From contig CDRNVI010000162.1 of the NCBI GenBank assembly GCA_977017575.1, positions 1-29,546 on the forward strand: a DNA stretch of 29,546 nucleotides. The letters run 5' to 3'. Below, in pieces: positions 1 through 26,978 of the stretch. The position numbers and the translations under genes are program-made. This DNA comes from Paramoeba atlantica (taxonomy: Eukaryota > Protista > Discosea). Under the pieces are notes generated by a model. The model was not told the origin of the DNA and ran no database searches. It saw only the letters and a list, made by a program, of their open reading frames with translations. The stretch's first letter is position 1. Each line of letters starts with the position of its first letter.

Positions 1-510
1 AGAGTTTCATAAATATTTGCCGTATAAATTTTTTACTCAAATTTTTTTATCAAGGAAATCAAAATTAATTTAATGAATTAGCCGTATTTTTGGAATAAAA
101 AAAATTCCATTAAAATATCGAACACATTCATAAAAAAAATTTTAGAACCTAGATAAAAATTAGTAAATAAATTTATATAAAACCAAATATTAAAAACTCA
201 AGAATATTAAAAAATAAAAATTAAATTTATAAAAAGTTTTCAATTCACCTAATTCTTTAGTCGATAAATTATGTTTACCCAATTAATAATTTATGTCTAA
301 GAATGAAAATTAAAATTAAAATTTAATAGTTTTAAAACTATAAATATAAATTTATAACTTACTAATCATTGAAATTAAAAAAAATAATTTCGAAATGATT
401 TGAAAAGTATAAATTAAAAATTTAAAAGTTTAAAATTTAAAATTAAAATTTAAATTTATTTTTAGTCGATAAATTATGTTTACCCAATTAATAATTTATG
501 TCTAAAAACT

Positions 511-830
511 AAAGAACAAGCATAGTTTAGTCTTATTCCGTGTTAAGTCCTCAACCCTTAAGTCGGACTTGTCACTACATTTTATATTCTAACTTTATTT
601 ACTTAAAATTAACCTAAGAATAAATTTTAGAGTATAAAGCTGAATATATTCCACTGACCCTCGACCTAGTTCATTTTTATCTTTACTTATTTTTATTTTC
701 ACAATAGCAATAGAAAAACTAATTTATTTTTTATAATTTTATTAAACTTTTTTTTATTTACTTTAGCTCCTTGAACACAATAATCCGCAAAACTAAATCT
801 AAAAGATTAATTAAAAATTATGAAAATAAA
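511..830 (+). repeat. Dispersed repeat block B (copies 511-830, 3358-3678, partial 7434-7626, diverged 7641-7875)
   Basis: Near-identical text beginning aaagaacaagcatagtttagtcttattccgtgttaagtcc. Each of the three near-identical copies directly follows a 215-bp-repeat core. Confidence 0.92.
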
Positions 831-924
831 ACACAAAAACATCAGTACAAAGTCCTGTATTTTCGCCATTTAAAAATCGCGAAAAAATTTTTACATGCTC
901 TCCAGATTTATTTAATTTTTTATT

Positions 925-1003
925 CACGATTTTATTGGAAAAATAACACTACGAAAGCGATTCAAAAAAATTCGCATCAGTGTTAAATTTCCAACAAAAA
1001 CGG
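925..1003. repeat. Representative of the dispersed TGGAAA..TTTCCA hairpin family (near-identical copies 12843-12921, 13929-14007, 14116-14194)
   Basis: Arms ttttattggaaaaataacact / agtgttaaatttccaacaaaa flank an inner gcga..A-run..tcgc stem. Confidence 0.9.
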
Positions 1004-1054
1004 AATAAATAAATTACATAATCTAGAAAGCAATGTAAAAATTCGTATTAACCT

Positions 1055-2225
1055 TTTGTCCTTTTACAACTCATTGGGAACACCTCCATTGCCAAAAAAG
1101 TATGGAAGTGCCCCCAAATTCTGTTGGAAAAGTAGCACTAAAAAATTTGAAATTTGAAAAGATTTTTTACATGTTCTCACGATGTGTTTTCTGTTGGAAA
1201 ATTAACTGTGTTTACTTGAAAAATAGCAAAGTAACACATGTTAAATTTCCTACAGAAATCACGATCTGGAGATCAAAGTAAAAACTCCAGTATCCTCGTC
1301 CTTTTGCAACCCATTTGGGTGGGTACCATCCAAAAAATGATGGAAAACACCATCCGAAAAAAAGATGGAAACCCACCAAATTCTGTTGGAAAAATGACGG
1401 TAAATTTTCAATTTACAAATATTTTTCGTCATGTTTCTCGCTGATTATGTAAAACGTCGAAGAAAACGACTTCTATAAAAATACTTCTGCCGGAAAAAAG
1501 CTCAAAACAGCGCATTTTTTTCGGCAGGCGGCATTTTTAAAAAGTCACTTTCTCCGAGGTTTTTCGACAAAACATCGAAAACATTTTTTACATGATCTGC
1601 AGATGTATTTTTTTGTTGGAAAATTAACTGTGTTCGCTTGAAAAATAGCAAAGGAACACATGTTAAATTTCCTACAAAACTACGATCTGGAGATCAAAGT
1701 AAAAACGATAGTATCCTTGTCCTTTTGCAACCCATTTGGGTGGGTACCATCCAAAAAATGATGGAAAACACCATCCGAAAAAAAGATGGAAACCCACCAA
1801 ATTCTGTTGGAAAAATGACGGTAAATTTTCAATTTACAAATATTTTTCGTCATGTTTCTCGCTGATTATGTAAAAACGTCGAAGAAAACGACTTCTATAA
1901 AAATACTTCTGCCGGAAAAATCTCAAAACAGCGCATTTTTTTCGGCAGGCGGCATTTTTAAAAAGTCACTTTCTCCGAGGTTTTTCGACAAAACAGCGAA
2001 AACATTTTTTACATGATCTGCAGATGTATTTTTTTGTTGGAAAATTAACTGTGTTCGCTTGAAAAATAGCAAAGGAACACATGTTAAATTTCCTACAAAA
2101 CTACGATCTGGAGATCAAAGTAAAAATTATAGTATCTTTGTCCTTTTGCAACTCATTGGGGCACCACCAAAAAAATGATGGAAACACCCCAAATTTTGTT
2201 GGAAAATGACACTGAAATTTTCAAT
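1055..2225 (+). repeat. ~421-bp tandem repeat (two full copies ~1189-1610 and ~1611-2031, partial copies on both sides)
   Basis: gttggaaaattaactgtg at 1193, 1615 and 2036. The duplicated ORF-track peptides end at 1444 and 1865 (offset 421). Confidence 0.92.
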
Positions 2226-2300
2226 TTGCAGATTTATTTTTTACAACTTTTCGTCGATTTCTAACAATCGTCGTAGAAAATGACTTTTTTTCCTTTTTTT

Positions 2301-2575
2301 TACACGATTCTGTTGGAAAATGACAGTGTAAGTCGGTAAAAAAACCTTCCTCACTTTTATTTTCAACAAAAACGGTTAAAAATAGGGAAAAAAATCTATT
2401 TCTCCGAGGATTTTTAGAAAAAGCCAAAATGCTCATTTTGGAGAGTTCCAGCTGAAAATGGCCGTTGTGTTCTTCCTTTTTTTTAACACGATTCTGTTGG
2501 AAAATGACAGTGCAAGTCGGTAAAAAAACCTTCCTCACTTTTATTTCCAACAAAAACGGTTAAAAATAGGGAAAA
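2301..2575 (+). repeat. Duplicated hairpin element (2301-2390, 2486-2575; third copy 10546-10630)
   Basis: acacgattctgttggaaaatgacagtg(t/c)aagtcggtaaaaaaaccttcctcactt..caacaaaaacggttaaaaat occurs three times. Confidence 0.9.
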
Positions 2576-2817
2576 ACACAGTGCCCTTTAGCGGACACTC
2601 CAATATGAGATTTTTAACTTCATTTTCCGATATGTCATCTGCTTTGTACCAAAATCCGATGGTCGATTATCGATAAAAAGAGTTAAAAATTAAAAAATAA
2701 AAAGTTCTATAAATTTTAATTTACCTAATATATAAAATTTATTAACCTTTCTGTTTATTATTTTATGTTTGTTTTCTATGAATGTAACATTTCCGATATG
2801 TTATCTTCTTTGTACCA

Positions 2818-3188
2818 AAATCAGATGTCGATTATCGTACATGTTCATTACATGAAAACAACATAGATACAATAAACAAGAAAGAATCATTAAAAGTATT
2901 TAATAAAATTATTATAAGATCAATAAATTTTTTTACCCAATCAAAATTAAATTGAACAATAATAAATTATATAAATAATTTTAATAAAAAACATTATATT
3001 TAATTTTACTTTTTTTCGTGGGCTATAATAAAGTGGTATAACCTTTTATTCTCAGCATTTCTTTTAGCGAGTTCCTTTAAATAATGGGAACGCTATAACG
3101 AAATGTTTCCCACGAAAAATAAGAATATATTCTATTTTATTATTATGTTTTCATGTAATGAACATGTACGATAATCAACATCGGATTT
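2818..3188. repeat. Nested inverted repeats (43-bp outer arms, 11-bp and imperfect inner stems)
   Basis: 2818-2860 is the reverse complement of 3146-3188 with 2 mismatches. tttttcgtggg 3012-3022 pairs with cccacgaaaaa 3109-3119. An inner hairpin spans 3056-3105. Confidence 0.85.
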
Positions 3189-3782
3189 GAGGTAAAAGAA
3201 CACTCAATCCTTATAGTTGCTTAATCTGTATGTTTTATTACGAAAACAATATAATAAAAAGTAAAATTAAAATAAAATGAAAATTAAAATTAAAATTTAA
3301 ATTTATTTTTAGTCGATAAATTATGTTTACCCAATTAATAATTTATGTCTAAAAATTAAAGAACAAGCATAGTTTAGTCTTATTCCGTGTTAAGTCCTCA
3401 ACCCTTAAGTCGGACTTGTCACTGCATTTTATATTCTAGCTTTATTTACTTAAAATTAACCTAAGAATAAATTTTAAAGTATAAAGCTGAATATATTCCA
3501 CTGACCCTCGACCTAGTTCATTTTTATCTTTACTTATTTTTATTTCCACAATAGCAATAGAAAAACTAATTTATTTTTTATAATTCTATTAAACTTTTTT
3601 TTATTTACTTTAGCTCCTTGAACACAACAATCCGCAAAACTAAATCTAAAAGATTAATTAAAAATTATGAAAATAAAATAGATACAAAATCAAAGTTTTT
3701 AAGCCTCGTCTTAGAATAAATAAAAACTTATCTAAATTCACCAACTCTATTTTTTATAAAAAAATATAAAAATATGAGTCGG

Positions 3783-4520
3783 ATGATTTTAGAGAGTTTA
3801 TGTTTATTCTGAAGCTCCTGTATTCATCACATGAATGTTCTGATCAGGAGTTTGTATAGGGTTTTTAACCCTACAAACCTACAGCTTCAAAACATGAATG
3901 AATTGAATAACATTTTCAATGTCCTGTGCTTACTGGCTCTGATTGGATAAATCTTATCAGATGCACAGAGCACAGTGTATTCAAATTCATCGTTCCTATT
4001 ACTCTCTGTTTCTTTGGTTCATTCTAAGTGAAGTTCTGTTGTTTGGCTCGTTACTTTACGTACTCAACTATACAAACTTAACTTCTCTTGAATTCATTCC
4101 TTTTCACTTTTTACCTTTAGAATTCTCGCAAGCGATCCTTCATTCCTTTTGCTCCTTTAATTTTGTTGCCTTCGACCTAACAAGTGTCGTGGCAAATTCT
4201 TGATTTCTTGCTGCCTCAGGCACGACAGCTAACGCTTGTCTCTACTCGATGGCCGTAAACTGGCACATCTTCGAGAACATCCATCGCCTATATTCCGTTA
4301 CATTGGCATGAATTTTCATATGCCATCAATGAACGGAATTTTATTCTTTTCCTATAACCGCTAACACAAACACCTGTTGCTCTTCCTCCATATGCCTAGA
4401 ATCTGTTCATTTCATTCATTTGATCTTAGGCTGTGGAGCCTTTTTCTGCTTAAAAAAGGAAAAAGGGGAGGCAGGTGATTTGGGGGGTAGCGGTTTGAGG
4501 ATGTGATGATTCTTGTTTAA
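3783..4520 (+). CDS. cox3: Cytochrome c oxidase subunit 3 cryptogene, kinetoplastid-type (TGA=Trp; 5' frameshift edit; pre-edited 3' domain ~4451-4520)
   Basis: With TGA=Trp the frame runs from 3793 through the homologous region without TAA/TAG (8 in-frame TGA between 3832 and 4330). It gives RVYVYS..FLWFILSEVLLFGSLLYV (Glu at 4030)..SLEF..ANSWFLAASGTTAN..HQWTEF..HFIHLILG (4408-4431). These match trypanosomatid COIII motifs FLWFIISE, INTFLLFVSGLFVN, NQVWEF and HFSHVFLG, with similar spacing. The last helix (YWHxVD) is recoverable only by U insertion. The 3' end (TAA 4518-4520) is approximate. Confidence 0.9.
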
Positions 4521-4550
4521 AAGAAAAGACGAATCATCAAAGAATAAAAG

Positions 4551-5010
4551 ATGGGAGTTTTTGTGAGATTTGTAGGAGAGTGCGATGATGTTTCAGCCTT
4601 CTGCTATCCTCATTACTAGTGATGAAGGTTACCCAATGCTTCCCACTAGTATTCGGATTCGCATCCTGCAAACACATGGATGCGATCTGATTTATTTTAG
4701 GGAGCTTCATATTAGTAATACTTGTATTTCGCTTAATTATGTTGTTATTTGGACATAATGAATTATGTTTTGATTTAATACGTATGGGCAGGGTAGAGGA
4801 ACGAGGATAGAGGGATAGAGGTAGAGGTTAGAGGTGAACGATGCAGCTGAGATAATGAGATGAGATGGTAAAGGGGAGCTTAGGTACGACACAACGAGGG
4901 CGGGAAGTTGTGTGAGTACCTGGACGCTATATTGAGGTTGGGGCGGAGATGTAGGTGAATGTGTCAAGTATGTGAGATGTGGGACGCATCGTGATGCTTC
5001 AAGGGGAGAG
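4551..5010 (+). CDS. cox2: Cytochrome c oxidase subunit 2 cryptogene (unedited core ~4586-4783; pre-edited 5' end and pre-edited C-terminal half)
   Basis: The unedited frame 4586-4783 reads WCFSLLLSSLLVMK..FASCKHMDAIWFILGSFILVILVFRLIMLLFGHNELCFDLIR. This is collinear with trypanosomatid COII (..DFISSKFIDTYWFVLG..LLRLCLLLYF..FDLCK). The following G/A-rich 4784-5010 decodes by U editing to IVGFQWYW, YLIGDLRILQ, KLWVSxVDVIHSFT, DCIPGR and YGQCSEICGxxHxxMP. The start ATG at 4551 and the end at ~5008-5010 are inferred. Confidence 0.88.
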
Positions 5011-5199
5011 ATCTGCGATTAAAAGCTGCCCATACGAAAATCAAAAAAATAACATCAAAATTTCCCAAAAATAAACAGAGTTAAATTTTATTATCACATA
5101 TTTTTTTAATACCTGTAATTTATTAAATATTTAATTACAAAAATAATTTAAAATATTATCTATAAATAACCGTATAATAAAAAATAGTAGTTAAAAAAA

Positions 5200-7430
5200 T
5201 TAAACTTAAATTAAAATTAAAATTTAAAAGTTTTAAAACTATAAATATAAATTTATAACTTATTAATCATTGAAATTAAAAAAAATTAATTTCGAAATGA
5301 TTTAAAAAGTATAAAAATTAAAAATTTAAAAGTTTAAAATTTAAAATTAAAATTTAAATTTATTTTTAGTCGATAAATTATGTTTACCCAATTAATAATT
5401 TATGTCTAAAAATTAGCAAGAAACAAGAATAAAATTAAAATCAAAATTTAACAATTTTAAAACTATAAATATAAATTTATAACTTACTAATCATTGAAAT
5501 TAAAAAAAGTAATTTCAAAATGATTTAAAAAGTATAAATTAAAAATTTAAAAGTTTAAAATTTAAAATTAAAATTTAAATTTATTTTTAGTCGATAAATT
5601 ATGTTTACCCAATTAATAATTTATGTCTAAAAATTTTTACAAAATTAGCAAAAGTAATAAATTAAAATTAAAATTTAAAAGTTTTAAAAGTATAAATTAG
5701 CTGGTACAAAAATGGTAAGTTTCTCTGCCGGAAATCCACCGAAAAGACGGTTTTTCCGGCGCAAACTCCAATTTTGTTACCAACCGGTACAAAAAGGGTA
5801 GTCTCCCTGCCGGAAATCCACCGAAAAGACGGTTTTTCCGGAGGGAACTCCCATTTTGTTACCTATAATTTATAACTTACTAATCATTGAAATTAAAAAA
5901 AATAATTTCGAAATGATTTGAAAAGTATAAATTAAAAATTTAAAAGTTTAAAATTTAAAATTAAAATTTAAATTTATTTTTAGTCGATAAATTATGTTTA
6001 CCCAATTAATAATTTATGTCTAAAAATTTTAAAGCACAAAATTAAAATTAAAATTTAAAAGTTTTAAAACTATAAATATAAATTTATAACTTACTAATCA
6101 TTGAAATTAAAAAAAATTAATTTCGAAATGATTTGAAAAGTATAAATTAAAAATTTAAAAGTTTAAAATTTAAAATTAAAATTTAAATTTATTTTTAGTC
6201 GATAAATTATGTTTACACAATTAATAATTTATGTCTAAAAATTTTAAAGAATAAAATTAAAATTAAAATTTAAAAATTTTAAAACTATAAATATAAATTT
6301 ATAACTTACTAATCATTGAAATTAAAAAAAATAATTTCGAAATGATTTGAAAAGTATAAATTAAAAATTTAAAAGTTTAAAATTTAAAATTAAAATTTAA
6401 ATTTATTTTTAGTCGATAAATTATGTTTACACAATTAATAATTTATGTCTAAAAATTTTAAAGAATAAAATTAAAATTAAAATTTAAAAATTTTAAAACT
6501 ATAAATATAAATTTATAACTTACTAATCATTGAAATTAAAAAAAATAATTTCGAAATGATTTGAAAAGTATAAATTAAAAATTTAAAAGTTTAAAATTTA
6601 AAATTGAAATTTAAATTTATTTTTAGTCGATAAATTATGTTTACACAATTAATAATTTATGTCTAAAATTTTAATTAAATAATTTTATTAAACTTTTTTT
6701 TATTTACTTTAGCTACTTGAACACTACAGTTCGCTAAACTAAATCTAAAAGATTAATTAAAAATTATAAAAATTAAAAAATAAAAAACACAAAGAATAAA
6801 ATTAAAATTAAAATTTAAAAGTTTTAAAACTATAAATATAAATTTATAACTTACTAATCATTGAAATTAAAAAAAATTAATTTCGAAATGATTTGAAAAG
6901 TATAAATTAAAAATTTAAAAGTTTAAAATTTAAAATTAAAATTTAAATTTATTTTTAGTCGATAAATTATGTTTACCCAATTAATAATTTATGTCTAAAA
7001 ATTTTAAAGAACAAAATTAAAATTAAAATTTAAAAGTTTTAAAACTATAAATATAAATTTATAACTTACTAATCATTGAAATTAAAAAAAATTAATTTCG
7101 AAATGATTTGAAAAGTATAAATTAAAAATTTAAAAGTTTAAAATTTAAAATTAAAATTTAAATTTATTTTTAGTCGGTAAATTATGTTTACACAATTAAT
7201 AATTTATGTCTAAAAATTTTAAAGAACAAAATTAAAATTAAAATTTAAAAGTTTTAAAACTATAAATATAAATTTATAACTTACTAATCATTGAAATTAA
7301 AAAAAATTAATTTCGAAATGATTTGAAAAGTATAAATTAAAAATTTAAAAGTTTAAAATTTAAAATTAAAATTTAAATTTATTTTTAGTCGATAAATTAT
7401 GTTTACCCAATTAATAATTTATGTCTAAAA
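5200..7430 (+). repeat. AT-rich tandem array of ~214-215-bp units (about 9 units, one interrupted)
   Basis: Core gtcgataaattatgtttac(c/a)caattaataatttatgtc starts at 5369, 5590, 5983, 6198, 6412, 6626, 6958, 7173 and 7388. The regular spacings are 214-215 bp. Further cores occur at 260, 465, 3312, 10903, 11142 and 11319. Confidence 0.95.
5703..5863. repeat. Pair of ~80-bp GC-richer hairpin elements inserted in the AT-rich array
   Basis: 5703-5781 and 5786-5863 share ctgccggaaatccaccgaaaagacggtttttccgg. Each folds back on itself (ggtacaaaa/ttttgttacc; ccggaaa/tttccgg). Confidence 0.85.
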
Positions 7431-10208
7431 ACTAAAGAACAAGCATAGTTTAGTCTTATTCCGTGTTAAGTCCTCAACCCTTAAGTCGGACTTGTCACTA
7501 CATTTTATATTCTAACTTTATTTACTTAAAATTAACCTAAGAATAAATTTTAGAGTATAAAGCTGAATATATTCCACTGACCCTCGACCTAGTTCATTTT
7601 TATCTTTACTTATTTTTATTTTCACAAGCACTTTTACAAGAATAGTTTAGTTTAATTCCGTGTTAAATCCTCAATCCTTAAGTCGGATTTGTCACTCCAT
7701 ATACGATCAAACTTTATTTACTTAAATTTTTACAAAGATAGTAAAATTAAAAGTATAAAGATGATCTAGCTCACCAGTTTTATTTAAATTAAAATCTTAC
7801 ACAATGATTTTATATTTATAAACTACTCGCTTCCATCGACCCTCGACCTAGTTCATTTTATCTTTACTTATTTTTATTTTCCAATATTACAGGCATTTCT
7901 TGCATAAACTCGCGTTTAAATGTGATCTTATAATAATTTTAGTTTTTTCTTAACAAAACCTATAAATATTATCCAAAATAAAAAATTTAATTTGATAATA
8001 TTGAGGTTTTTTAAGCACAAAATTAATAAAGTCACTTTAAACGGCGATTTTTGGAATTTTAGTTTTCTTAGAAAAAACATATAATATTCTCCTAAATAAA
8101 AATTTTAATTTGATAATATTGATGTTTTTTTAAACACAAAATTCACGGTTCGAACCCTTTTTGTGCACTTTTTTTGGAATTTTACCACTTTTTTCCACTT
8201 TTTTTCACTTTTTTTGTCATTTTTGCGTCAAAAAATGATTAAAAAGCAGTTAAAAATAGGGAAAAAGGGCAAAAATACGACACTTTTGAGCATAAAACAA
8301 AAAAATATGCCAACGTGTCAAAAACGTGCACCAAAGTCACTCAAGAGTGACAGGTCATTTTCCGACAAAGGAAAATTCCCTAAAAAAAAACTACCAGGTG
8401 TCGAACCCCTCAAGAAATGCTGTAATATTATTTTTTTTGCCTTCAAGATCTGGAGATCATTCATTTTTATTCTAAAGACCATCGCTTTTCGCTGTTTCGA
8501 CGAAGTCAAAGCCGTTTTGCTACCTTTTTTAATCACCTGTTTTTAATTTCTAACTTTTTTGTACCAAAGACCCCCCATTTTTCCACAAAAGAGTGCAAAA
8601 AAAAAACGGGCTCTTGGACAAGCAGTTGAAAAGTCACAGTTTTTTACTAAAAAGGTAGGAAAAAGGCACGAAAAACGACGAAAAATGAAAGAAATCCAGA
8701 AAAAACGCCAAAAAAATAATAAAACAGCATGTTTTTTGTGATTTTATGTCAAATTTCCACCATAAAACGTTGCAACACCACAAATTTCTAAAAAAAATTT
8801 GAAATTATTTGTGCTTGTCTTACGTTTTGGCTGGTGCAATTTATCATAATCGAACAAAAAACAAAAAAATTTTTCACTGATTTTTGGCGACCCGACGTTT
8901 TCGGGGCAAAAAAATACGCCAAAAAATCAAAACGTAGAAAATAAAAAAATTTGGTCTACGTTTCCTGAAGGCGTGAAAAAATTTTATCAAAAAAAATTTT
9001 TTTTTTCTCGAGCAAACGAGAAAAATCAAAAAAAAAATTGACAGGCCGTTTTGTGATGATTTTAATTTTTTGCAATTTTGGAACCACGACGATTCCTGAA
9101 GTCAATCGCAAAAACCGTTCCAAAATAATTAAAATTTCACCAAAAATCTCGAAATGCTCAATCCCATGGTGACCCCTGGGTTTTTTGATGCATACGAAAT
9201 TTTTTTTTTTGTATCTTCGGCAGGCGATTTTCGAAGATAATGAATTTTTCTCTTCTTGGCCTGGAGCCGCAAATCGTGGATTTCGACCGCGGTTCCGTTT
9301 TTTTCAAAACTAAAAAAATCTTTATTTGCACGGCAAAACTCGTATTGACAATTTCTCTTATCAGGCTTTTCCTTGATAAAGCCGAGAAATTTAAATCGAA
9401 TCACGGCAAAATCTGAGATTTTGAAACAAAATGCCTGTGAACGATTTCAATAGTTTTTGTGCAACTCTAAAAAATTTTTTAAGTCCAAAGAAACATTTTT
9501 TATTGGGAAATTAGCAGTAATTTTTGTATCACCTAAAAAAACGCCTCGCGCGTCCGTATACGGGACACATATGTGCGCTCGCGTGCGCGTATGACGTGCG
9601 TCTACTACTTTTCCTTTAATTCTGCGCCTCTCATTCGACTTTTCGCCTAACAACGGGATAGGGACAAAAAAGTGACTTGGTCTCCAGATCAAAAAATCTG
9701 GAAGTCTTTTTTGCACCCGTGTTTTCGAGAAATCTTTGATAATCGCAGACTTAAAAAGGAAAAAAAAGACATCGCGAGGTGATCAAAAAAATTACAAGCC
9801 AATCAATAACAAAATGACGAAAAATCCGCAAAAACGGACTGTCACCAATTTTTATACTTTAAAATTTTAACACCCAAAAAACCCCTGTTTTCTCGTGCTT
9901 GCACACAAGTTTATACACAAAAAAATGTAAACTTGATGAAGCAATTTTCGAGAAACCCGAGTTTTTAGTGTTTATAAAATTTCAAATAATTCCCAAATAA
10001 CCCAACTTTTTTTTACAATTTTCTGTGGAAAAATAACTGCAGACACTCGAAAATATTCTGTAAAAAAACAGTAAATTTTCCTATGAGCTCTCAGTTATTT
10101 TCCAACAGAGAATTACTAAAAAAAGTAAGGGCATTTTAGGAATTAAAAACAATAAAAAATCTTCAAATAAAAGCGTTTTTGATGGAAGAATGATAAATTT
10201 ATACTTTA

Positions 10209-11290
10209 TATATAATATTTTTTACCATATTTAATTACAAAAATAATTTAAAATATAGTTTATAAATATTATTAAAAAGTATAAATAATCTCATTCACCC
10301 TCAATAAAATTCGTATTTCATAGAAATACCTCCTGCCCGAAAAAGCGCCAAAAAGCGCTTGTTCCGGCGGAAATTCGTCCACAGTTCCCTGTTTTTACAC
10401 GATTCTGTTGGAAAATGACGGTAACACCAAAAGAGGTCCGTCATACCTAACAGAAACGGCAAAACAGGAAATGTTAAACATTTTTCCGCCGGAAAATACG
10501 TCTTTTTATCATTTTCTCGGCAGGAAATTGGGAGTCCCTTTTTAACACGATTCTGTTGGAAAATGACAGTGTAAGTCGGTAAAAAAACCTTCCTCACTTC
10601 TATTCCCAACAAAAACGGTTAAAAATGGGGTTTTAAAAATCCCAATTCCTCCGTAGAAAATCGCAAAAAAAGACTCTTTTCTGGCGTAGGAGACTCAACT
10701 GCCTGGAACACGATTCTCTTGGAAAATAGCAGTGATTAGTAACATTGGATTTTGAGCCAAAAAGCATCAAATCCATTAGTTTACAATCACTGTTAATTTC
10801 CAACAGAAACGGTCCGTCTTCTCGCCCCGAATTTTGTATAAAAAACGCTTTAAATAAGAGAATTTTTATTCGTTTTATATCAAAATTTATTTTTTATTTT
10901 TAGTCGATAAATTATGTTTACCCAATTAATAATTTATGTCTAAAAATTCAAAAAATTGAAATTAAAATTAAAATTTAAAAATTCTAAAACTATAAATATA
11001 AATTTATACTTGATATATAATATTTTTTACCATATTTAATTACAAAAATAATTTAAAATATAGTTTATAAATATTATTAAAAAGTATAAATTAAAAATTT
11101 AAAAGTTTAAAATTTAAAATTAAAATTTAAATTTATTTTTAGTCGATAAATTATGTTTACCCAATTAATAATTTATGTCTAAAAATTTAAAGGACAAAAT
11201 TAAAATTAAAATTTAAAATTATATATAATATTTTTTACCATATTTAATTACAAAAATAATTTAAAATATAGTTTATAAATATTATAAAAT
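10209..11290 (+). repeat. Second AT-rich repeat zone: ~80-bp unit (10209-10285, ~11012-11090, ~11221-11286) interleaved with 215-bp-repeat cores
   Basis: atatataatattttttaccatatttaattacaaaaataatttaaaatatagtttataaatatta occurs three times. Cores are at 10903, 11142 and 11319. Confidence 0.85.
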
Positions 11291-11421
11291 TTAAAATTAA
11301 AATTTAAATTTATTTTTAGTCGATAAATTATGTTTACTCAATTAATAATTTATGTCTAAAAAAAGAAAAAATAAAAAGAGCAAGCGAAAAAGCAAGACAA
11401 AAATAAAAAGCACGGCAATTC

Positions 11422-11509
11422 CTGCTAAGATTTCTACGAAATTCAAGCAGTAAGATCATGATAAGATTTCTACGAAATTCAATCATGAAGCATACACTAT
11501 AGTGTATGC
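11422..11509. other. Twin hairpins followed by a perfect 20-bp palindrome
   Basis: ctgct-aagatttctacgaaattca-agcag (11422-11450); tcatgat-aagatttctacgaaattca-atcatga (11456-11488); gcatacactatagtgtatgc (11490-11509). Confidence 0.85.
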
Positions 11510-11727
11510 AAATTATTACAAAAATAATAATTTTAAAATTTTTTCTTCGAAATTCAAAGAAGAATTTACTTGAAAAAAAATAAATTTCTATGTTTACATA
11601 GGGGATGTAAACTGAAATTTATAATTATATTTCGTTGAATTAAGAGAATAATTAAACGAAACTGTTACTCGGCAAAAATAAGGGAATTTTTGAGTAACAG
11701 ACCGTTCAAATTGAAAACAAAAAAACA

Positions 11728-11867
11728 ATTTGCACGGCAATTCTTGGGGTTTTTACGCCTCACGGCTTCGTGATCGGATAAAGAGCAGGAGCGAGAGCAA
11801 GAGTTTGTAGGCGGTAGATGATATAGGTGTTCCCGGTGCGAGTTTATTTTTTCTCTATATTCCTTAG
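11728..11867 (+). CDS. rps12: Probable pan-edited ribosomal protein S12 cryptogene
   Basis: Purine-rich island. Its non-U skeleton decodes in order to T-P (acg cct 11755-11760), xxP, xSGNR, VCxVRL, SN and GGRVKxLPGVRY (ggc ggt aga 11810-11818; ccc ggt 11832-11837). Compare S12 TPKKPNSALRKVCRVRLTN..GGRVKDLPGVRY. Several U deletions are needed and the conserved Asp reads as Gly. Boundaries are approximate. Confidence 0.55.
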
Positions 11868-11869
11868 TT

Positions 11870-12110
11870 GTGGCAATTTGGGATAGCGAAGTAAAATTTT
11901 TAAAGTTTGCTATCGACAATTGCTCTTCTCTTTTTTATTTTGCCGCACATCGCTAATTGATCCCAATAGACGATTGCATTAAGAAAGGATCGTTAACTTC
12001 ACTATATGAACAGACATAAGATTCAGTAAGATCCATTCATATCTCTCTGCTTCTTTTAATGGCCTGTAGCATACTCCCCATTTCCACAATCCGTATGCGC
12101 TCAGACCTAT
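11870..12110 (+). rRNA. Possible divergent mitochondrial LSU rRNA domain V fragment
   Basis: Motifs occur in LSU order: GGGATAGCGAAGTAA..TATCGACAAT (11880-11920), ATCCCAAT..AAAGGATCGTT (11960-11995), TCAGACC (12101-12107). Several local stems are present, such as gatagcgaa/tttgctatc and ttgggat/atcccaa. The ACCTCGATGT core and the A-loop are poorly matched. Confidence 0.3.
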
Positions 12111-12625
12111 ATACCCGCGCCTCGTCGCGTGTGTAAGGCGTGCGCGAGATCATCGCTCACGCCGGCGCGCGTGTCCGAGTTCAGCAAGGATTTTTGCTAA
12201 AATCCGGGGGAGCTGAATCTTCTTACGCTCGCGCGAGAAAATTTTTCCAACAAAATTAATTTTCTCGTTTACGTCAAAAATCCTACAGACCAAAATTTAC
12301 TCTTTCAAATTTCCCAAAAAAAAGAAATGTAAGGTATGCCGTTTTCCGAGTGAAGGGTCTACCGGAAAGTTGGCGCCTTATCTTTCTTTTTTTGTATAAT
12401 TTTTAAGGCATTTTGGTGCCAGAGATTTTTGACAGAATTCCTGAACTCCCACGCAGGGATACGTACGCGATCGAATGACGCGCGTGAGAAGTTTTTTTTG
12501 TAGGAAGGTGACTGGCCCAAAAAAGCGGCACGCGGGCCAAGTCATTTTCCAACAAAAAAATCCATTCGCGCGCGCAGGATCCCTAACGCGGCCGGATCGT
12601 GCACGCGAGTATCCCTGAAAATTTG

Positions 12626-14390
12626 CACGATTTTATTGGAAAATTAGCAGTGTAAAAGTGGTCAAAAAAAGACTCACATTCACTGCTGATTTCCAGTAAA
12701 AACGGCAATTCGTGCGCCCTATTGGAAAACTGATAGTGCGTGGCTGTCAAAAAAGCCTGCCATCACTGTCACATTTCCTATAGTAGTTCAGTATTTTGCA
12801 TGATTTTGTAGGAAAAATAACAGTGCGTAAATTTTTATTATTCACGATTTTATTGGAAAAATAACACTACGAAAGCGATTCAAAAAAATTCGCATCAGTG
12901 TTAAATTTCCAACAAAAACGGAATAAATAAAATTACATCCCTGTTAATTTTCCAACACAAACAGCAAAATAAAGGCACTATTTTGTTGGAAAATAACAGT
13001 GAATTTTCACACGATGCTCTTGGAAAAATTACAGTGAGAAAAAAATAAGACTCACTGATTTTTCCAATAGCAAACGGTTCCAATACTGATAAATTTCCAA
13101 CAAAACATACAAAAAAAAGTGAAAAAATTGCAAATTTCCCAAATATCGGAAGTTTTACTAGATTATCTGTTGGAAATTTAACGGGTACCCTCCGAAAAAA
13201 CGCCGGGTCGACTCCGTTAGTTTTCCTACAGTCAGTAACCCTTCCTGCAAAAAAAATCGCCACCCCCGAATAAAGAATCGAATTGGCGAATTTCTTTGTG
13301 GGAAAATTAGCAGTAAAATTTTCATGTTACAATCATAAAAATGCAATAGAAAAAATTCCTTACAGGAAAATACACGGCAAAAATTGATTCCCAAATTTTT
13401 AGCCTGTGCCGGAAATTTTCTTCGTCGCTCGATTTGTTTCGGAGGCAAAAAACGAAACAAAAACGAAAATTCTACTGTAGATTTTCCTGTAAGGAAATTT
13501 TCTATTTTACATTTACAAATCCGTCAATCAGGATTTAGATTGTAAATCAAAATTTAAAATTTTTCCACACTTAATTTTTTCACTAAACTGTTGGAAAAAT
13601 GACTGTAAAAAAAATTAACAAAAATAAATTTTTTTTCTAAAAACACAGTCAATTTTACAATACAGCTAAGGGAAAAAATTAACAAGGTTTTGAAACTCTC
13701 ATCAGTAAATGTAACTGTAAATGACCTATTTTTTTATCACGTTTTTGTGTAGGAAAATTATCGCTAAAAGGCTTATAAAAAAATAACCCAATTTATAGCG
13801 TTAAGTTTCCAACAAAACGGATCAAAAAAAAGATACATACCAGTTAATTTTCCTGATAAGAGAGCAAAACCTAAATCTATTTACACGATTTTTGTTGGCA
13901 AAATCACAGTGCATGATTTTATATCTATCACGATTTTATTGGAAACATAACACTATGAAAGCGATTCAAACAAATTCGCATCAGTGTTAAATTTCCAAAA
14001 AAAACGGATCCACATAAAATACAAGCACAGTAGAAATTCCAACAAAAAACGGAAAACGATAAATTTTTTTGCACGATTTTATTGGAAAATGTAGTTATCA
14101 TAAATTTTTACTATTCACGATTTTATTGGAAAAATAACACTACGAAAGCGATTTAAAAAAATTCGCATCAGTGTTAAATTTCCAACAAAAACGGAATAAA
14201 TAAAAATAAACGATACTAACAAATTTCCAATAAATAACGGCAAAAGAAAAGGCTTTTTTGGTCCATTTTGTTGGATAAACGACAGTGTCTTGATTTATTT
14301 TAGTTTCCCGCACGATTTCTTGGAAAAATCACAGAAAACGGCCTGCAAACATAAATCAATTACAGTCAATTTCCCAACAAAATACAAAAA
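12626..14390. repeat. Dense cluster of TGGAAA..TTTCCA hairpin elements
   Basis: Successive fold-back elements with conserved arms and different interiors, e.g. 12626-12705, 12720-12784, 12843-12921, ~13019-13067 and ~13168-13231. Confidence 0.8.
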
Positions 14391-17300
14391 ACCCGTTTAA
14401 TCTTATATAAAACGCCGGAAGTTTTTCAACTTTTTAGATTTTAATGTCTCCGAAAAACGCCCAAAAACAGGCTGTCGACGAAAATCTCCTACGTTTTCTA
14501 CCGCGCGGACGTGTCAGATTAAACCCTATTATGACGAACGGATGCGCGATCGCGCGCACGCTGTGCACGTTCGTGTTAGGATTTCTAAACCTATAAATCT
14601 TAATCCAAAGGAGGATTTTTGAAATCCTAACGGTGAGCATACGGCAATTTTTTACATGGAACTCGAAAAATACGGTTCCAACGGGTACTTTGCAGGTTTT
14701 GCCGTGGTTCAACAAAAGTACTCGGCAAAAATGTGCAAAGTGCGATCAACCGGTTCGCTAGAAAAATGCCTTCGGAAGCGATTCCGAGTTTTGCCGCGCA
14801 AAAAATTTGACAGGCCGTATTATTGAATACTTTTTTAACACCTTAAAATTGTAATTTTTTAAATAATCAGAGTTTCATAAATATTTGCCGTATAAATTTT
14901 TTACTCAAATTTTTTTATCAAGGAAATCAAAATTAATTTAATGAATTAGCCGTATTTTTGGAATAAAAAAAATTCCATTAAAATATCGAACACATTCATA
15001 AAAAAAATTTTAGAACCTAGATAAAAATTAGTAAATAAATTTATATAAAACCAAATATTAAAAACTCAAGAATATTAAAAAATAAAAATTAAATTTATAA
15101 AAAGTTTTCAATTCACCTAATTCTTTAGTCGATAAATTATGTTTACCCAATTAATAATTTATGTCTAAGAATGAAAATTAAAATTAAAATTTAATAGTTT
15201 TAAAACTATAAATATAAATTTATAACTTACTAATCATTGAAATTAAAAAAAATAATTTCGAAATGATTTGAAAAGTATAAATTAAAAATTTAAAAGTTTA
15301 AAATTTAAAATTAAAATTTAAATTTATTTTTAGTCGATAAATTATGTTTACCCAATTAATAATTTATGTCTAAAAACTAAAGAACAAGCATAGTTTAGTC
15401 TTATTCCGTGTTAAGTCCTCAACCCTTAAGTCGGACTTGTCACTACATTTTATATTCTAACTTTATTTACTTAAAATTAACCTAAGAATAAATTTTAGAG
15501 TATAAAGCTGAATATATTCCACTGACCCTCGACCTAGTTCATTTTTATCTTTACTTATTTTTATTTTCACAATAGCAATAGAAAAACTAATTTATTTTTT
15601 ATAATTTTATTAAACTTTTTTTTATTTACTTTAGCTCCTTGAACACAATAATCCGCAAAACTAAATCTAAAAGATTAATTAAAAATTATGAAAATAAAAC
15701 ACAAAAACATCAGTACAAAGTCCTGTATTTTCGCCATTTAAAAATCGCGAAAAAATTTTTACATGCTCTCCAGATTTATTTAATTTTTTATTCACGATTT
15801 TATTGGAAAAATAACACTACGAAAGCGATTCAAAAAAATTCGCATCAGTGTTAAATTTCCAACAAAAACGGAATAAATAAATTACATAATCTAGAAAGCA
15901 ATGTAAAAATTCGTATTAACCTTTTGTCCTTTTACAACTCATTGGGAACACCTCCATTGCCAAAAAAGTATGGAAGTGCCCCCAAATTCTGTTGGAAAAG
16001 TAGCACTAAAAAATTTGAAATTTGAAAAGATTTTTTACATGTTCTCACGATGTGTTTTCTGTTGGAAAATTAACTGTGTTTACTTGAAAAATAGCAAAGT
16101 AACACATGTTAAATTTCCTACAGAAATCACGATCTGGAGATCAAAGTAAAAACTCCAGTATCCTCGTCCTTTTGCAACCCATTTGGGTGGGTACCATCCA
16201 AAAAATGATGGAAAACACCATCCGAAAAAAAGATGGAAACCCACCAAATTCTGTTGGAAAAATGACGGTAAATTTTCAATTTACAAATATTTTTCGTCAT
16301 GTTTCTCGCTGATTATGTAAAACGTCGAAGAAAACGACTTCTATAAAAATACTTCTGCCGGAAAAAAGCTCAAAACAGCGCATTTTTTTCGGCAGGCGGC
16401 ATTTTTAAAAAGTCACTTTCTCCGAGGTTTTTCGACAAAACATCGAAAACATTTTTTACATGATCTGCAGATGTATTTTTTTGTTGGAAAATTAACTGTG
16501 TTCGCTTGAAAAATAGCAAAGGAACACATGTTAAATTTCCTACAAAACTACGATCTGGAGATCAAAGTAAAAACGATAGTATCCTTGTCCTTTTGCAACC
16601 CATTTGGGTGGGTACCATCCAAAAAATGATGGAAAACACCATCCGAAAAAAAGATGGAAACCCACCAAATTCTGTTGGAAAAATGACGGTAAATTTTCAA
16701 TTTACAAATATTTTTCGTCATGTTTCTCGCTGATTATGTAAAAACGTCGAAGAAAACGACTTCTATAAAAATACTTCTGCCGGAAAAATCTCAAAACAGC
16801 GCATTTTTTTCGGCAGGCGGCATTTTTAAAAAGTCACTTTCTCCGAGGTTTTTCGACAAAACAGCGAAAACATTTTTTACATGATCTGCAGATGTATTTT
16901 TTTGTTGGAAAATTAACTGTGTTCGCTTGAAAAATAGCAAAGGAACACATGTTAAATTTCCTACAAAACTACGATCTGGAGATCAAAGTAAAAATTATAG
17001 TATCTTTGTCCTTTTGCAACTCATTGGGGCACCACCAAAAAAATGATGGAAACACCCCAAATTTTGTTGGAAAATGACACTGAAATTTTCAATTTGCAGA
17101 TTTATTTTTTACAACTTTTCGTCGATTTCTAACAATCGTCGTAGAAAATGACTTTTTTTCCTTTTTTTTACACGATTCTGTTGGAAAATGACAGTGTAAG
17201 TCGGTAAAAAAACCTTCCTCACTTTTATTTTCAACAAAAACGGTTAAAAATAGGGAAAAAAATCTATTTCTCCGAGGATTTTTAGAAAAAGCCAAAATGC

Positions 17301-18650
17301 TCATTTTGGAGAGTTCCAGCTGAAAATGGCCGTTGTGTTCTTCCTTTTTTTTAACACGATTCTGTTGGAAAATGACAGTGCAAGTCGGTAAAAAAACCTT
17401 CCTCACTTTTATTTCCAACAAAAACGGTTAAAAATAGGGAAAAACACAGTGCCCTTTAGCGGACACTCCAATATGAGATTTTTAACTTCATTTTCCGATA
17501 TGTCATCTGCTTTGTACCAAAATCCGATGGTCGATTATCGATAAAAAGAGTTAAAAATTAAAAAATAAAAAGTTCTATAAATTTTAATTTACCTAATATA
17601 TAAAATTTATTAACCTTTCTGTTTATTATTTTATGTTTGTTTTCTATGAATGTAACATTTCCGATATGTTATCTTCTTTGTACCAAAATCAGATGTCGAT
17701 TATCGTACATGTTCATTACATGAAAACAACATAGATACAATAAACAAGAAAGAATCATTAAAAGTATTTAATAAAATTATTATAAGATCAATAAATTTTT
17801 TTACCCAATCAAAATTAAATTGAACAATAATAAATTATATAAATAATTTTAATAAAAAACATTATATTTAATTTTACTTTTTTTCGTGGGCTATAATAAA
17901 GTGGTATAACCTTTTATTCTCAGCATTTCTTTTAGCGAGTTCCTTTAAATAATGGGAACGCTATAACGAAATGTTTCCCACGAAAAATAAGAATATATTC
18001 TATTTTATTATTATGTTTTCATGTAATGAACATGTACGATAATCAACATCGGATTTGAGGTAAAAGAACACTCAATCCTTATAGTTGCTTAATCTGTATG
18101 TTTTATTACGAAAACAATATAATAAAAAGTAAAATTAAAATAAAATGAAAATTAAAATTAAAATTTAAATTTATTTTTAGTCGATAAATTATGTTTACCC
18201 AATTAATAATTTATGTCTAAAAATTAAAGAACAAGCATAGTTTAGTCTTATTCCGTGTTAAGTCCTCAACCCTTAAGTCGGACTTGTCACTGCATTTTAT
18301 ATTCTAGCTTTATTTACTTAAAATTAACCTAAGAATAAATTTTAAAGTATAAAGCTGAATATATTCCACTGACCCTCGACCTAGTTCATTTTTATCTTTA
18401 CTTATTTTTATTTCCACAATAGCAATAGAAAAACTAATTTATTTTTTATAATTCTATTAAACTTTTTTTTATTTACTTTAGCTCCTTGAACACAACAATC
18501 CGCAAAACTAAATCTAAAAGATTAATTAAAAATTATGAAAATAAAATAGATACAAAATCAAAGTTTTTAAGCCTCGTCTTAGAATAAATAAAAACTTATC
18601 TAAATTCACCAACTCTATTTTTTATAAAAAAATATAAAAATATGAGTCGG

Positions 18651-19388
18651 ATGATTTTAGAGAGTTTATGTTTATTCTGAAGCTCCTGTATTCATCACAT
18701 GAATGTTCTGATCAGGAGTTTGTATAGGGTTTTTAACCCTACAAACCTACAGCTTCAAAACATGAATGAATTGAATAACATTTTCAATGTCCTGTGCTTA
18801 CTGGCTCTGATTGGATAAATCTTATCAGATGCACAGAGCACAGTGTATTCAAATTCATCGTTCCTATTACTCTCTGTTTCTTTGGTTCATTCTAAGTGAA
18901 GTTCTGTTGTTTGGCTCGTTACTTTACGTACTCAACTATACAAACTTAACTTCTCTTGAATTCATTCCTTTTCACTTTTTACCTTTAGAATTCTCGCAAG
19001 CGATCCTTCATTCCTTTTGCTCCTTTAATTTTGTTGCCTTCGACCTAACAAGTGTCGTGGCAAATTCTTGATTTCTTGCTGCCTCAGGCACGACAGCTAA
19101 CGCTTGTCTCTACTCGATGGCCGTAAACTGGCACATCTTCGAGAACATCCATCGCCTATATTCCGTTACATTGGCATGAATTTTCATATGCCATCAATGA
19201 ACGGAATTTTATTCTTTTCCTATAACCGCTAACACAAACACCTGTTGCTCTTCCTCCATATGCCTAGAATCTGTTCATTTCATTCATTTGATCTTAGGCT
19301 GTGGAGCCTTTTTCTGCTTAAAAAAGGAAAAAGGGGAGGCAGGTGATTTGGGGGGTAGCGGTTTGAGGATGTGATGATTCTTGTTTAA
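18651..19388 (+). CDS. cox3: cox3 cryptogene, copy 2
   Basis: Corresponds to 3783-4520 at +14868 (ATG 18651, TAA 19386-19388). Confidence 0.9.
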
Positions 19389-19418
19389 AAGAAAAGACGA
19401 ATCATCAAAGAATAAAAG

Positions 19419-19878
19419 ATGGGAGTTTTTGTGAGATTTGTAGGAGAGTGCGATGATGTTTCAGCCTTCTGCTATCCTCATTACTAGTGATGAAGGTTAC
19501 CCAATGCTTCCCACTAGTATTCGGATTCGCATCCTGCAAACACATGGATGCGATCTGATTTATTTTAGGGAGCTTCATATTAGTAATACTTGTATTTCGC
19601 TTAATTATGTTGTTATTTGGACATAATGAATTATGTTTTGATTTAATACGTATGGGCAGGGTAGAGGAACGAGGATAGAGGGATAGAGGTAGAGGTTAGA
19701 GGTGAACGATGCAGCTGAGATAATGAGATGAGATGGTAAAGGGGAGCTTAGGTACGACACAACGAGGGCGGGAAGTTGTGTGAGTACCTGGACGCTATAT
19801 TGAGGTTGGGGCGGAGATGTAGGTGAATGTGTCAAGTATGTGAGATGTGGGACGCATCGTGATGCTTCAAGGGGAGAG
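19419..19878 (+). CDS. cox2: cox2 cryptogene, copy 2
   Basis: Corresponds to 4551-5010 at +14868. Confidence 0.88.
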
Positions 19879-20067
19879 ATCTGCGATTAAAAGCTGCCCA
19901 TACGAAAATCAAAAAAATAACATCAAAATTTCCCAAAAATAAACAGAGTTAAATTTTATTATCACATATTTTTTTAATACCTGTAATTTATTAAATATTT
20001 AATTACAAAAATAATTTAAAATATTATCTATAAATAACCGTATAATAAAAAATAGTAGTTAAAAAAA

Positions 20068-22298
20068 TTAAACTTAAATTAAAATTAAAATTTAAAAGTT
20101 TTAAAACTATAAATATAAATTTATAACTTATTAATCATTGAAATTAAAAAAAATTAATTTCGAAATGATTTAAAAAGTATAAAAATTAAAAATTTAAAAG
20201 TTTAAAATTTAAAATTAAAATTTAAATTTATTTTTAGTCGATAAATTATGTTTACCCAATTAATAATTTATGTCTAAAAATTAGCAAGAAACAAGAATAA
20301 AATTAAAATCAAAATTTAACAATTTTAAAACTATAAATATAAATTTATAACTTACTAATCATTGAAATTAAAAAAAGTAATTTCAAAATGATTTAAAAAG
20401 TATAAATTAAAAATTTAAAAGTTTAAAATTTAAAATTAAAATTTAAATTTATTTTTAGTCGATAAATTATGTTTACCCAATTAATAATTTATGTCTAAAA
20501 ATTTTTACAAAATTAGCAAAAGTAATAAATTAAAATTAAAATTTAAAAGTTTTAAAAGTATAAATTAGCTGGTACAAAAATGGTAAGTTTCTCTGCCGGA
20601 AATCCACCGAAAAGACGGTTTTTCCGGCGCAAACTCCAATTTTGTTACCAACCGGTACAAAAAGGGTAGTCTCCCTGCCGGAAATCCACCGAAAAGACGG
20701 TTTTTCCGGAGGGAACTCCCATTTTGTTACCTATAATTTATAACTTACTAATCATTGAAATTAAAAAAAATAATTTCGAAATGATTTGAAAAGTATAAAT
20801 TAAAAATTTAAAAGTTTAAAATTTAAAATTAAAATTTAAATTTATTTTTAGTCGATAAATTATGTTTACCCAATTAATAATTTATGTCTAAAAATTTTAA
20901 AGCACAAAATTAAAATTAAAATTTAAAAGTTTTAAAACTATAAATATAAATTTATAACTTACTAATCATTGAAATTAAAAAAAATTAATTTCGAAATGAT
21001 TTGAAAAGTATAAATTAAAAATTTAAAAGTTTAAAATTTAAAATTAAAATTTAAATTTATTTTTAGTCGATAAATTATGTTTACACAATTAATAATTTAT
21101 GTCTAAAAATTTTAAAGAATAAAATTAAAATTAAAATTTAAAAATTTTAAAACTATAAATATAAATTTATAACTTACTAATCATTGAAATTAAAAAAAAT
21201 AATTTCGAAATGATTTGAAAAGTATAAATTAAAAATTTAAAAGTTTAAAATTTAAAATTAAAATTTAAATTTATTTTTAGTCGATAAATTATGTTTACAC
21301 AATTAATAATTTATGTCTAAAAATTTTAAAGAATAAAATTAAAATTAAAATTTAAAAATTTTAAAACTATAAATATAAATTTATAACTTACTAATCATTG
21401 AAATTAAAAAAAATAATTTCGAAATGATTTGAAAAGTATAAATTAAAAATTTAAAAGTTTAAAATTTAAAATTGAAATTTAAATTTATTTTTAGTCGATA
21501 AATTATGTTTACACAATTAATAATTTATGTCTAAAATTTTAATTAAATAATTTTATTAAACTTTTTTTTATTTACTTTAGCTACTTGAACACTACAGTTC
21601 GCTAAACTAAATCTAAAAGATTAATTAAAAATTATAAAAATTAAAAAATAAAAAACACAAAGAATAAAATTAAAATTAAAATTTAAAAGTTTTAAAACTA
21701 TAAATATAAATTTATAACTTACTAATCATTGAAATTAAAAAAAATTAATTTCGAAATGATTTGAAAAGTATAAATTAAAAATTTAAAAGTTTAAAATTTA
21801 AAATTAAAATTTAAATTTATTTTTAGTCGATAAATTATGTTTACCCAATTAATAATTTATGTCTAAAAATTTTAAAGAACAAAATTAAAATTAAAATTTA
21901 AAAGTTTTAAAACTATAAATATAAATTTATAACTTACTAATCATTGAAATTAAAAAAAATTAATTTCGAAATGATTTGAAAAGTATAAATTAAAAATTTA
22001 AAAGTTTAAAATTTAAAATTAAAATTTAAATTTATTTTTAGTCGGTAAATTATGTTTACACAATTAATAATTTATGTCTAAAAATTTTAAAGAACAAAAT
22101 TAAAATTAAAATTTAAAAGTTTTAAAACTATAAATATAAATTTATAACTTACTAATCATTGAAATTAAAAAAAATTAATTTCGAAATGATTTGAAAAGTA
22201 TAAATTAAAAATTTAAAAGTTTAAAATTTAAAATTAAAATTTAAATTTATTTTTAGTCGATAAATTATGTTTACCCAATTAATAATTTATGTCTAAAA
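20068..22298 (+). repeat. AT-rich ~215-bp tandem array, copy 2
   Basis: Corresponds to 5200-7430 at +14868. Confidence 0.95.
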
Positions 22299-26595: not shown

Positions 26596-26735
26596 ATTTG
26601 CACGGCAATTCTTGGGGTTTTTACGCCTCACGGCTTCGTGATCGGATAAAGAGCAGGAGCGAGAGCAAGAGTTTGTAGGCGGTAGATGATATAGGTGTTC
26701 CCGGTGCGAGTTTATTTTTTCTCTATATTCCTTAG
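26596..26735 (+). CDS. rps12: Probable rps12 cryptogene, copy 2
   Basis: Corresponds to 11728-11867 at +14868. Confidence 0.55.
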
Positions 26736-26737
26736 TT

Positions 26738-26978
26738 GTGGCAATTTGGGATAGCGAAGTAAAATTTTTAAAGTTTGCTATCGACAATTGCTCTTCTCTT
26801 TTTTATTTTGCCGCACATCGCTAATTGATCCCAATAGACGATTGCATTAAGAAAGGATCGTTAACTTCACTATATGAACAGACATAAGATTCAGTAAGAT
26901 CCATTCATATCTCTCTGCTTCTTTTAATGGCCTGTAGCATACTCCCCATTTCCACAATCCGTATGCGCTCAGACCTAT
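26738..26978 (+). rRNA. Possible LSU rRNA fragment, copy 2
   Basis: Corresponds to 11870-12110 at +14868. Confidence 0.3.

Follow-up and report, generated by a model that had tools for sequence, protein, structure and literature searches.

The cox3 locus and the molecule that carries it

The window (the whole stretch of DNA that was analysed, 29,546 nt) carries on its plus strand a cox3 locus that comprises a candidate ATG with a short 5′ zone (3774-3792), an open core of 220 codons (3793-4452, 660 nt, frame mod 3 = 1) that encodes COX3 through helix 6 and ends ...ESVHFIHLILGCGAFFCL, a purine-rich skeleton of 38 nt (4453-4490), and a short in-frame tail (4491-4520). The gene is read in code 4, in which TGA specifies Trp. 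The core appears to be unedited, whereas the skeleton, on the basis of its composition and of its identity to a relative once T's are stripped, is predicted to be a domain edited by U insertion and deletion; the loop between helices 6 and 7 and the greater part of helix 7 should be encoded there.

The window is a 14,868-bp unit in doubled form, i.e., positions 1-14678 are identical to 14869-29546, and this doubling yields a second, identical copy of the cox3 3′ tract on the plus strand at 19319-19388 (equivalent to 4451-4520). The unit probably represents a mitochondrial chromosome that is either circular or repeated in tandem. A further copy of the unit within the same 40,689-nt contig, which encodes protein P0006, differs by one inserted or deleted nucleotide close to the T5 run (approx. 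4551-4555), which shifts the downstream frame. Thus, unit copies are not all identical, owing either to heteroplasmy or to homopolymer error. P0006, which is the second member of the protein cluster of the window, was considered as a possible edited product and was rejected as a genomic copy with a 1-nt frameshift.

The locus is deep in two sequencing runs. A contig from run X3 (depth 277) covers 3720-4712 with no differences from the DNA, and the window DNA can therefore be regarded as sound. With a query of 1,321 letters, runs X3 and X4 gave contigs over the cox3 locus that are identical to the DNA, and run X5, which is labelled 'RNA?', gave no contig matching the locus. In run X4, an 887-nt contig matches the window exactly over 3720-4511 and then continues with 24 letters (AATCTAAAGTGGAAAATAGGAGTT) that are absent from the window, and no contig of this run crosses 4512-4558. 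The departure at 4511/4512 may stem from a discontinuity in the assembly graph, or it may mark a molecule that is a variant or a recombinant.

The core is a very divergent COX3. The window's ORF and its TGA-free pieces had no Pfam match when used alone, and the pieces had no PDB match either; in the ESM Atlas, COX3 (PF00510) accounted for 99 of the best 100 clusters matched by an 86-aa piece of cox3 (best score 0.92). A full scan of 1.84 billion protein representatives returned four matches, two of which are real, namely the window's own ORF and P0003, encoded on metagenome contig L001; the remaining two were rejected as low-complexity false positives. Two word-index searches added only P0005, encoded on metagenome contig L002, and a scan of metagenome proteins gave no further cox3 relatives. 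L003, the single match to a degenerate DNA pattern for ESVHFxH, was rejected as a chance match. The protein identity to the window cox3 is 40% for L001 and 35% for L002. P0003 spans positions 5-212 of the Pfam COX3 profile, P0005 matches positions 80-208 of 258 (E = 5.4e-5; 23.6 bits, with a cut-off of 23.8), and a profile built from all three species (window, P0003, and P0005) matched 21 solved COX3 chains, with a best E of 2.6e-5. Because the COX3 homology ends at approx. profile position 208-212 of 258, i.e., at approx. residue 214 of 261 in the bovine protein, helices 1-6 are encoded in the DNA and the loop together with helix 7 (approx. 45-48 aa) is missing.

At the other end of the gene, a single ATG precedes the core (3774); it is not in the frame of the core, which is closed upstream by a TAG at 3790-3792. 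The removal of one nucleotide or the addition of two is needed to join this ATG to the core frame. The loss of one U or the gain of two within ...AGTTTATGTTTATTCT... would give MSRMILES-YVYSEAPVFITW, an N-terminus of a length like that of L001. In L001, the ATG is in frame, and the N-terminus is similar in length to that predicted for the window. By analogy with the cox3 genes of Perkinsela and Apiculatamorpha spiralis, positions 3774-3800 are probably a small 5′ editing site.

The purine-rich tract at the 3′ end of cox3

The recognisable COX3 part of the frame terminates in ...HLILGCGAFFCL (tta 4450-4452), and past 4452 the same frame continues as KKEKGEAGDLGGSGLRMWW... (also KKEKGEAGDLGGSGLRMWWFLFKRK...) until TAG 4573. 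Homology is lost at the same residue in the three species (GAFFCL, GSFLLL, and LFGWLW). An earlier note on this DNA had stated that homology in the genomic frame stops before the tract, and the same end point in the window and its two relatives bears this out; its listing of the skeleton is likewise exact in every letter. The listed letters begin with six A's (4452-4457), two G's (4458-4459), five A's (4460-4464), four G's (4465-4468), A 4469, two G's (4470-4471), C 4472, A 4473, and two G's (4474-4475), and they continue with T 4476, G 4477, A 4478, three T's (4479-4481), six G's (4482-4487), T 4488, A 4489, G 4490, and CGG 4491-4493, followed by TTT, GAG, GAT, and G. Between 4453 and 4503, the composition is A16 G24 C2 T9, i.e., 78% purine. 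A tract at the 3′ end of cox3 that is rich in G and A, poor in C and T, and breaks the frame of a conserved gene is as expected of pre-edited DNA.

Segments that are G-rich and C-poor are rare on the plus strand of the 14.9-kb unit, on which there are five only (4446-4521, 4548-4592, 4774-4888, 4921-4987, and 11787-11830). Besides the one at cox3, three of the four fall at putative cox2 or rps12 cryptogenes. The segment at 4548-4592 lies between the cox3 tract and the putative cox2 one, and it is perhaps the 5′ edited domain of the gene after cox3. The segment at 11787-11830 is the sole one away from the cox3/cox2 block and coincides with an rps12-like tract.

The gene that follows cox3 (4521-4807; 1748-1960 in L002) is conserved in frame mod 3 = 2 (...LFGHNELCFDLIRMGRVEERG in the window vs. 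...LLWEHSDVCFDVIRLGQGLEKRG in L002). It then enters a G-rich domain in which the T-stripped letters match those of L002 (AACGAGGGCAGGGAGAG, 4778-4798). The order of cox3 and this gene and their spacing of approx. 295 nt are the same in the window and L002.

The comparison with L001 sets the tract apart from the core and is the strongest argument against its being mere spacer. In the core, DNA identity between the window and L001 is 52%, and agreement is 63% where both letters are other than T. In the 3′ tract, agreement of the non-T letters is complete (35 of 35; Fisher p = 4e-7 vs. the core), and the two sequences differ at eight scattered sites of T insertion or deletion and by no substitutions. 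The non-T letters of the tract are better conserved between the two species than the coding core. Editing by U insertion and deletion predicts conserved non-T letters together with free T counts, and the pattern seen in the window and L001 fits this prediction. When T's are stripped, window 4459-4503 and L001 746-806 are identical over 36 consecutive letters, and no other exact run common to the two loci exceeds 15 (the maximum over 100 shuffles is 20); it should be noted that a purine-rich alphabet eases T-stripped matches as well as decodings, and that three species are non-independent samples. With T's kept, the longest run in the tract common to the window and L001 is 13 letters. L002 is nearly T-less across the tract, retains CAGGGAGGGGGGAGCGG at the collinear place, and has a 17-letter T-stripped block in common with the window. 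T-stripping has also been used to find pan-edited genes in prokinetoplastids (PMC7859406).

It might be argued that cox3 is a truncated or decaying pseudogene and that the tract is a non-coding spacer or a regulatory or replication element. A genomic ORF that lacks helix 7, a start codon that is out of frame, a protein that has no Pfam match of its own, and an RNA-labelled run in which the locus does not appear are all compatible with such decay. However, the open core of 220 codons is conserved across three species, in all of which homology stops at one and the same residue, the depth of the locus is high in two runs, and the non-T letters of the tract are not only more conserved than the core but also spell the missing motif. 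Decay of the gene is thus very improbable.

Restoration of helix 7 and the extent of the edited domain

Downstream of the cox3 core, none of the three forward frames contains a helix-7-like peptide or the YWHFVD motif. The missing segment of COX3 can be restored collinearly by added U's, which yield YWHFVDVVW in all three species, and this sequence is the motif of the C-terminal helix of COX3 in bacterial and mitochondrial chains. The motif skeleton in the window, A-GG-CA-GG-GA-GGGGGG (4469-4487, plus strand), can be spelled uAu uGG CAu uuu GuG GAu GuG GuG uGG. A T-stripped regular expression for YWHFVDVVW matches the window at 4469, L001 at 768, and L002 at 1641; elsewhere in the unit, the spelling is found at one other place in approx. 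19,000 T-stripped positions, and it is possible in 2.0% of composition-preserving shuffles of the tract. At the Trp position, L002 has GA instead of GG, which is synonymous in code 4 (UGA/UGG). The canonical HFVD requires the deletion of t4476 and of two of the three T's at 4479-4481, and L001 also has T's at both of these sites (one and four, respectively). A reading that uses insertions only gives HLVD, with an altered spacing to Trp.

The proposal that helix 7 is hidden in the purine skeleton had been accompanied by a residue-by-residue list. At the level of sequence, the YWH-x-V-D decoding of the tract is supported, since it can be spelled in three species, whereas the list as a whole is compatible with the letters but is one of several decodings that fit. 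The peptide that the earlier note gives as trypanosomatid COIII, when used as a probe, found its counterpart in the final helix of solved chains of COX3 (...YYWHFVDVVWIGLF..., ...LYWHFLDVVWIF...), and there was no kinetoplastid COX3 among the solved structures that it matched.

Directly 3′ of the tract, CGG TTT GAG GAT GTG ATG ATT CTT GTT TAA (4491-4520, plus strand) provides nine in-frame codons, RFEDVMILV*, with TAA at 4518-4520, as a candidate C-terminus and stop for cox3. The corresponding tail of L001 is CGG TTT GAG GAG TTT TTA GCT GAT TTT TAA (RFEEFLADF*), with the TAA at the same 27-nt distance. The block AGCGGTTTGAGGA (4489-4501, plus strand, 13 nt) is identical, T's included, to L001 793-805 and is the longest raw exact match in the region. 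This identity suggests that AGCGGTTTGAGGA is an unedited block and a candidate anchor of the first guide RNA; it likewise suggests that the last 30 nt (4491-4520) are translated as encoded. It is reasonable to assume that these 30 nt are probably the C-terminus and stop codon of cox3, and the edited domain may comprise only the 38 nt at 4453-4490. An edited 3′ domain of approx. 70 nt (4451-4520) had been envisaged; its beginning agrees with the start of the purine tract at approx. 4453, whereas its end should perhaps be moved back to 4490, the tail being already in frame in both the window and L001. The nine-codon tail is lacking in L002, and because the latter does not share it, the boundary at 4490 is placed by inference.

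In L001 (746-830), no stop interrupts the genomic frame between CAT (approx. 772) and TAA (822-824), and this frame has the phase of the tail (HGDFGVLERFEEFLADF*). Editing in L001 may be needed only upstream of this His codon, or several of these T's may be deleted.

Such an open frame raises the question of whether most of the 3′ end is translated as it stands in the DNA, into a C-terminus that has diverged, or whether a ribosomal frameshift, or just one or two minor edits, would suffice to reach it. The L001 frame H-G-D-F-G-V-L-E-R-F-E-E..., which runs from that CAT to the TAA in the phase of the tail, and the tail that the window and L001 have in common would both be in keeping with this. 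However, the stretch in the window is open in neither the core phase nor the tail phase without many added nucleotides, the peptides read directly from the DNA are hydrophilic (KKEKGEAGDLGG...) in the place of an expected membrane helix, and the distant L002 is almost T-less at the tract, which together render translation as encoded quite improbable.

A second possibility is that helix 7 comes from elsewhere, i.e., that the gene is split and completed by module trans-splicing of the diplonemid style or by U-appendage in a block, so that the tract would be a module junction. The molecule is indeed an unusual multi-copy 14.9-kb unit, and in euglenozoan mitochondria there are systems with fragmented genes and U-appendage (PMC3035467). 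Nonetheless, the collinear skeleton can itself encode the motif, and it does so only with interspersed U's; moreover, the T's that vary between species are distributed over eight scattered sites rather than in one block, and an in-frame tail and stop lie directly 3′ of the tract. Diplonemid modules are also far shorter than the 660-nt cox3 core, which counts against a module junction. A source of helix 7 outside the tract is, within this context, extremely improbable.

To judge from the nucleotide sequence, the tract very likely belongs to a mitochondrial cox3 cryptogene from an organism of kinetoplastid type and constitutes its 3′ domain before editing, in which helix 7 would be restored by U insertion. 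We infer that editing occurs, as well as its extent, the guide RNAs, and the exact mature sequence. The primary transcript would consist of the unedited core (3793-4452) followed by a G/A-rich, C-poor, and T-poor segment from 4453 to approx. 4490, or possibly to 4520. Anchored on the adjacent unedited block on the 3′ side (around AGCGGUUUGAGGA), guide RNAs that originate from other loci would direct the insertion of roughly 55-80 uridines, and perhaps the deletion of a few, in the 3′-to-5′ direction. Such editing would create approx. 45 codons for the helix 6-7 loop and helix 7, including YWH(F/L)VD, and would bring the core into one frame with the tail, which closes at TAA 4518-4520. As the core is in frame mod 3 = 1 and the tail in frame mod 3 = 0, the net gain of U's must be 1 mod 3. 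To fill approx. 45-48 codons, roughly 55-75 added U's would be needed, a figure of the same order as the estimate of approx. 80 in the earlier note. If editing has this 3′-to-5′ polarity, an edited 3′ domain beside an unedited core would not be explained by replacement of the gene with a partially edited cDNA.

Searches for guide RNAs covered both strands of the 14.9-kb unit. A free-U dynamic-programming search with log-odds scores gave a best score of 22.3, which is within the shuffled null of 16-24 (up to 23.8), and, with an anchor required, no more than 12 letters were guided, compared with a null of up to 35; such searches have low power in purine-rich, AT-rich sequence, and guide genes may sit on molecules other than the unit. 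Permissive free-U alignments were swamped by AT-rich repeats.

The unit also contains approx. 50 copies, in both orientations, of a motif of approx. 26 nt (CACGATTYTRT-TGGAAAA-TRACAGTG) at 925-2560, 10026-10800, and 12081-14330. Often, two copies approx. 50 nt apart pair as an imperfect hairpin whose interior varies and whose loop is A7. When these TGGAAA/TTTCCA hairpin copies were considered as guide-RNA cassettes for the cox3 tract, no significant complementarity was found. An anchored match within one such hairpin (approx. 14147) was rejected as a chance match, with nearly all of its pairs being wobble pairs.

Relation to the cox3 genes of kinetoplastids

The closest published counterpart is Perkinsela sp. 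(David et al. 2015, mBio), which has six mitochondrial genes, among them cox2, cox3, and rps12, and whose cox3 consists of an unedited core with separate edited 5′ and 3′ regions (PMC4669381). The 5′ region comprises 45-54 nt, and the 3′ region comprises 89-97 nt in its pre-edited form, with 93 U's inserted and two deleted (PMC4669381). The cox3 gene described here resembles that of Perkinsela in its unedited core and predicted edited ends, the comparison being made with the published table rather than with the sequence. The estimated gain of U's is of the same order as the 93 in Perkinsela. However, the unedited core is longer (660 nt vs. approx. 520 nt, as deduced from that table), and the predicted 3′ domain is shorter (38-68 nt vs. 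89-97 nt). The gene order differs as well. In Perkinsela, rps12 and cox3 are close neighbours on a scaffold that also carries cob, and cox2 accompanies cox1, whereas in the window the putative cox2 comes after cox3 and the rps12-like tract is found approx. 7 kb from there.

A similar arrangement has been reported for A. spiralis, the Cox3 of which is listed with '5′ and 3′ editing' that takes the transcript from 762 to 795 nt (Tikhonenkov et al. 2021, PMC7859406, Table S2); in this species, editing is typically located at the termini of transcripts (PMC7859406). As far as can be compared by description, its Cox3 has 79 insertions and 46 deletions, and its mtDNA is reported to be probably linear and of approx. 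19.5 kb. In the same study, Papus ankaliazontas was found to have several circular-mapping 'maxicircles' of approx. 2-13.6 kb, each with one to four genes and a conserved non-coding region (PMC7859406). The 14,868-bp unit, with cox3, a putative cox2, and an rps12-like tract, resembles these maxicircles, whereas Cox3 of P. ankaliazontas is pan-edited (377 to 771 nt; PMC7859406), unlike the ends-only editing predicted here.

In T. brucei and L. tarentolae, COIII transcripts undergo U insertion and deletion directed by guide RNAs (PMC10118304). The gene and the presumed mechanism are the same as in the window, but the extent of editing differs: it covers the whole COIII transcript in T. brucei and only the 5′ end in L. 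tarentolae, and it is predicted at the ends only in the window. The combination of an unedited core and an edited 3′ end had been put forward as a departure from both species, which it is; however, it is not new, having been published for Perkinsela (PMC4669381) and A. spiralis (PMC7859406). The cox3 pattern is already known in kinetoplastids and opens no new question.

A bolder reading, which we regard as unlikely, is that the molecule belongs to a prokinetoplastid-like lineage that has yet to be described and that may live as an endosymbiont in an amoeba, with mitochondrial genes on multicopy 14.9-kb circles and with the conserved-arm hairpin arrays as guide-RNA genes. In such a lineage, cox3 would be in an intermediate state of editing, with short edited domains at both ends. 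If this were true, the window, L001 (with more genomic T's), and L002 (with almost none) would constitute a graded series that bears on the shrinkage or growth of edited domains.

Returning to the reading of the tract as a pre-edited 3′ domain, its confirmation would bring to three the documented lineages whose cox3 combines an unedited core with editing confined to the ends. The window and its two metagenomic relatives would then represent a small series with the same helix-7 skeleton and different numbers of genomic T's, and such a series bears on the expansion or erasure of editing domains. For annotation, confirmation would mean that cox3 is not a pseudogene here and that G-rich, C-poor segments mark the domains of cryptogenes on this chromosome.
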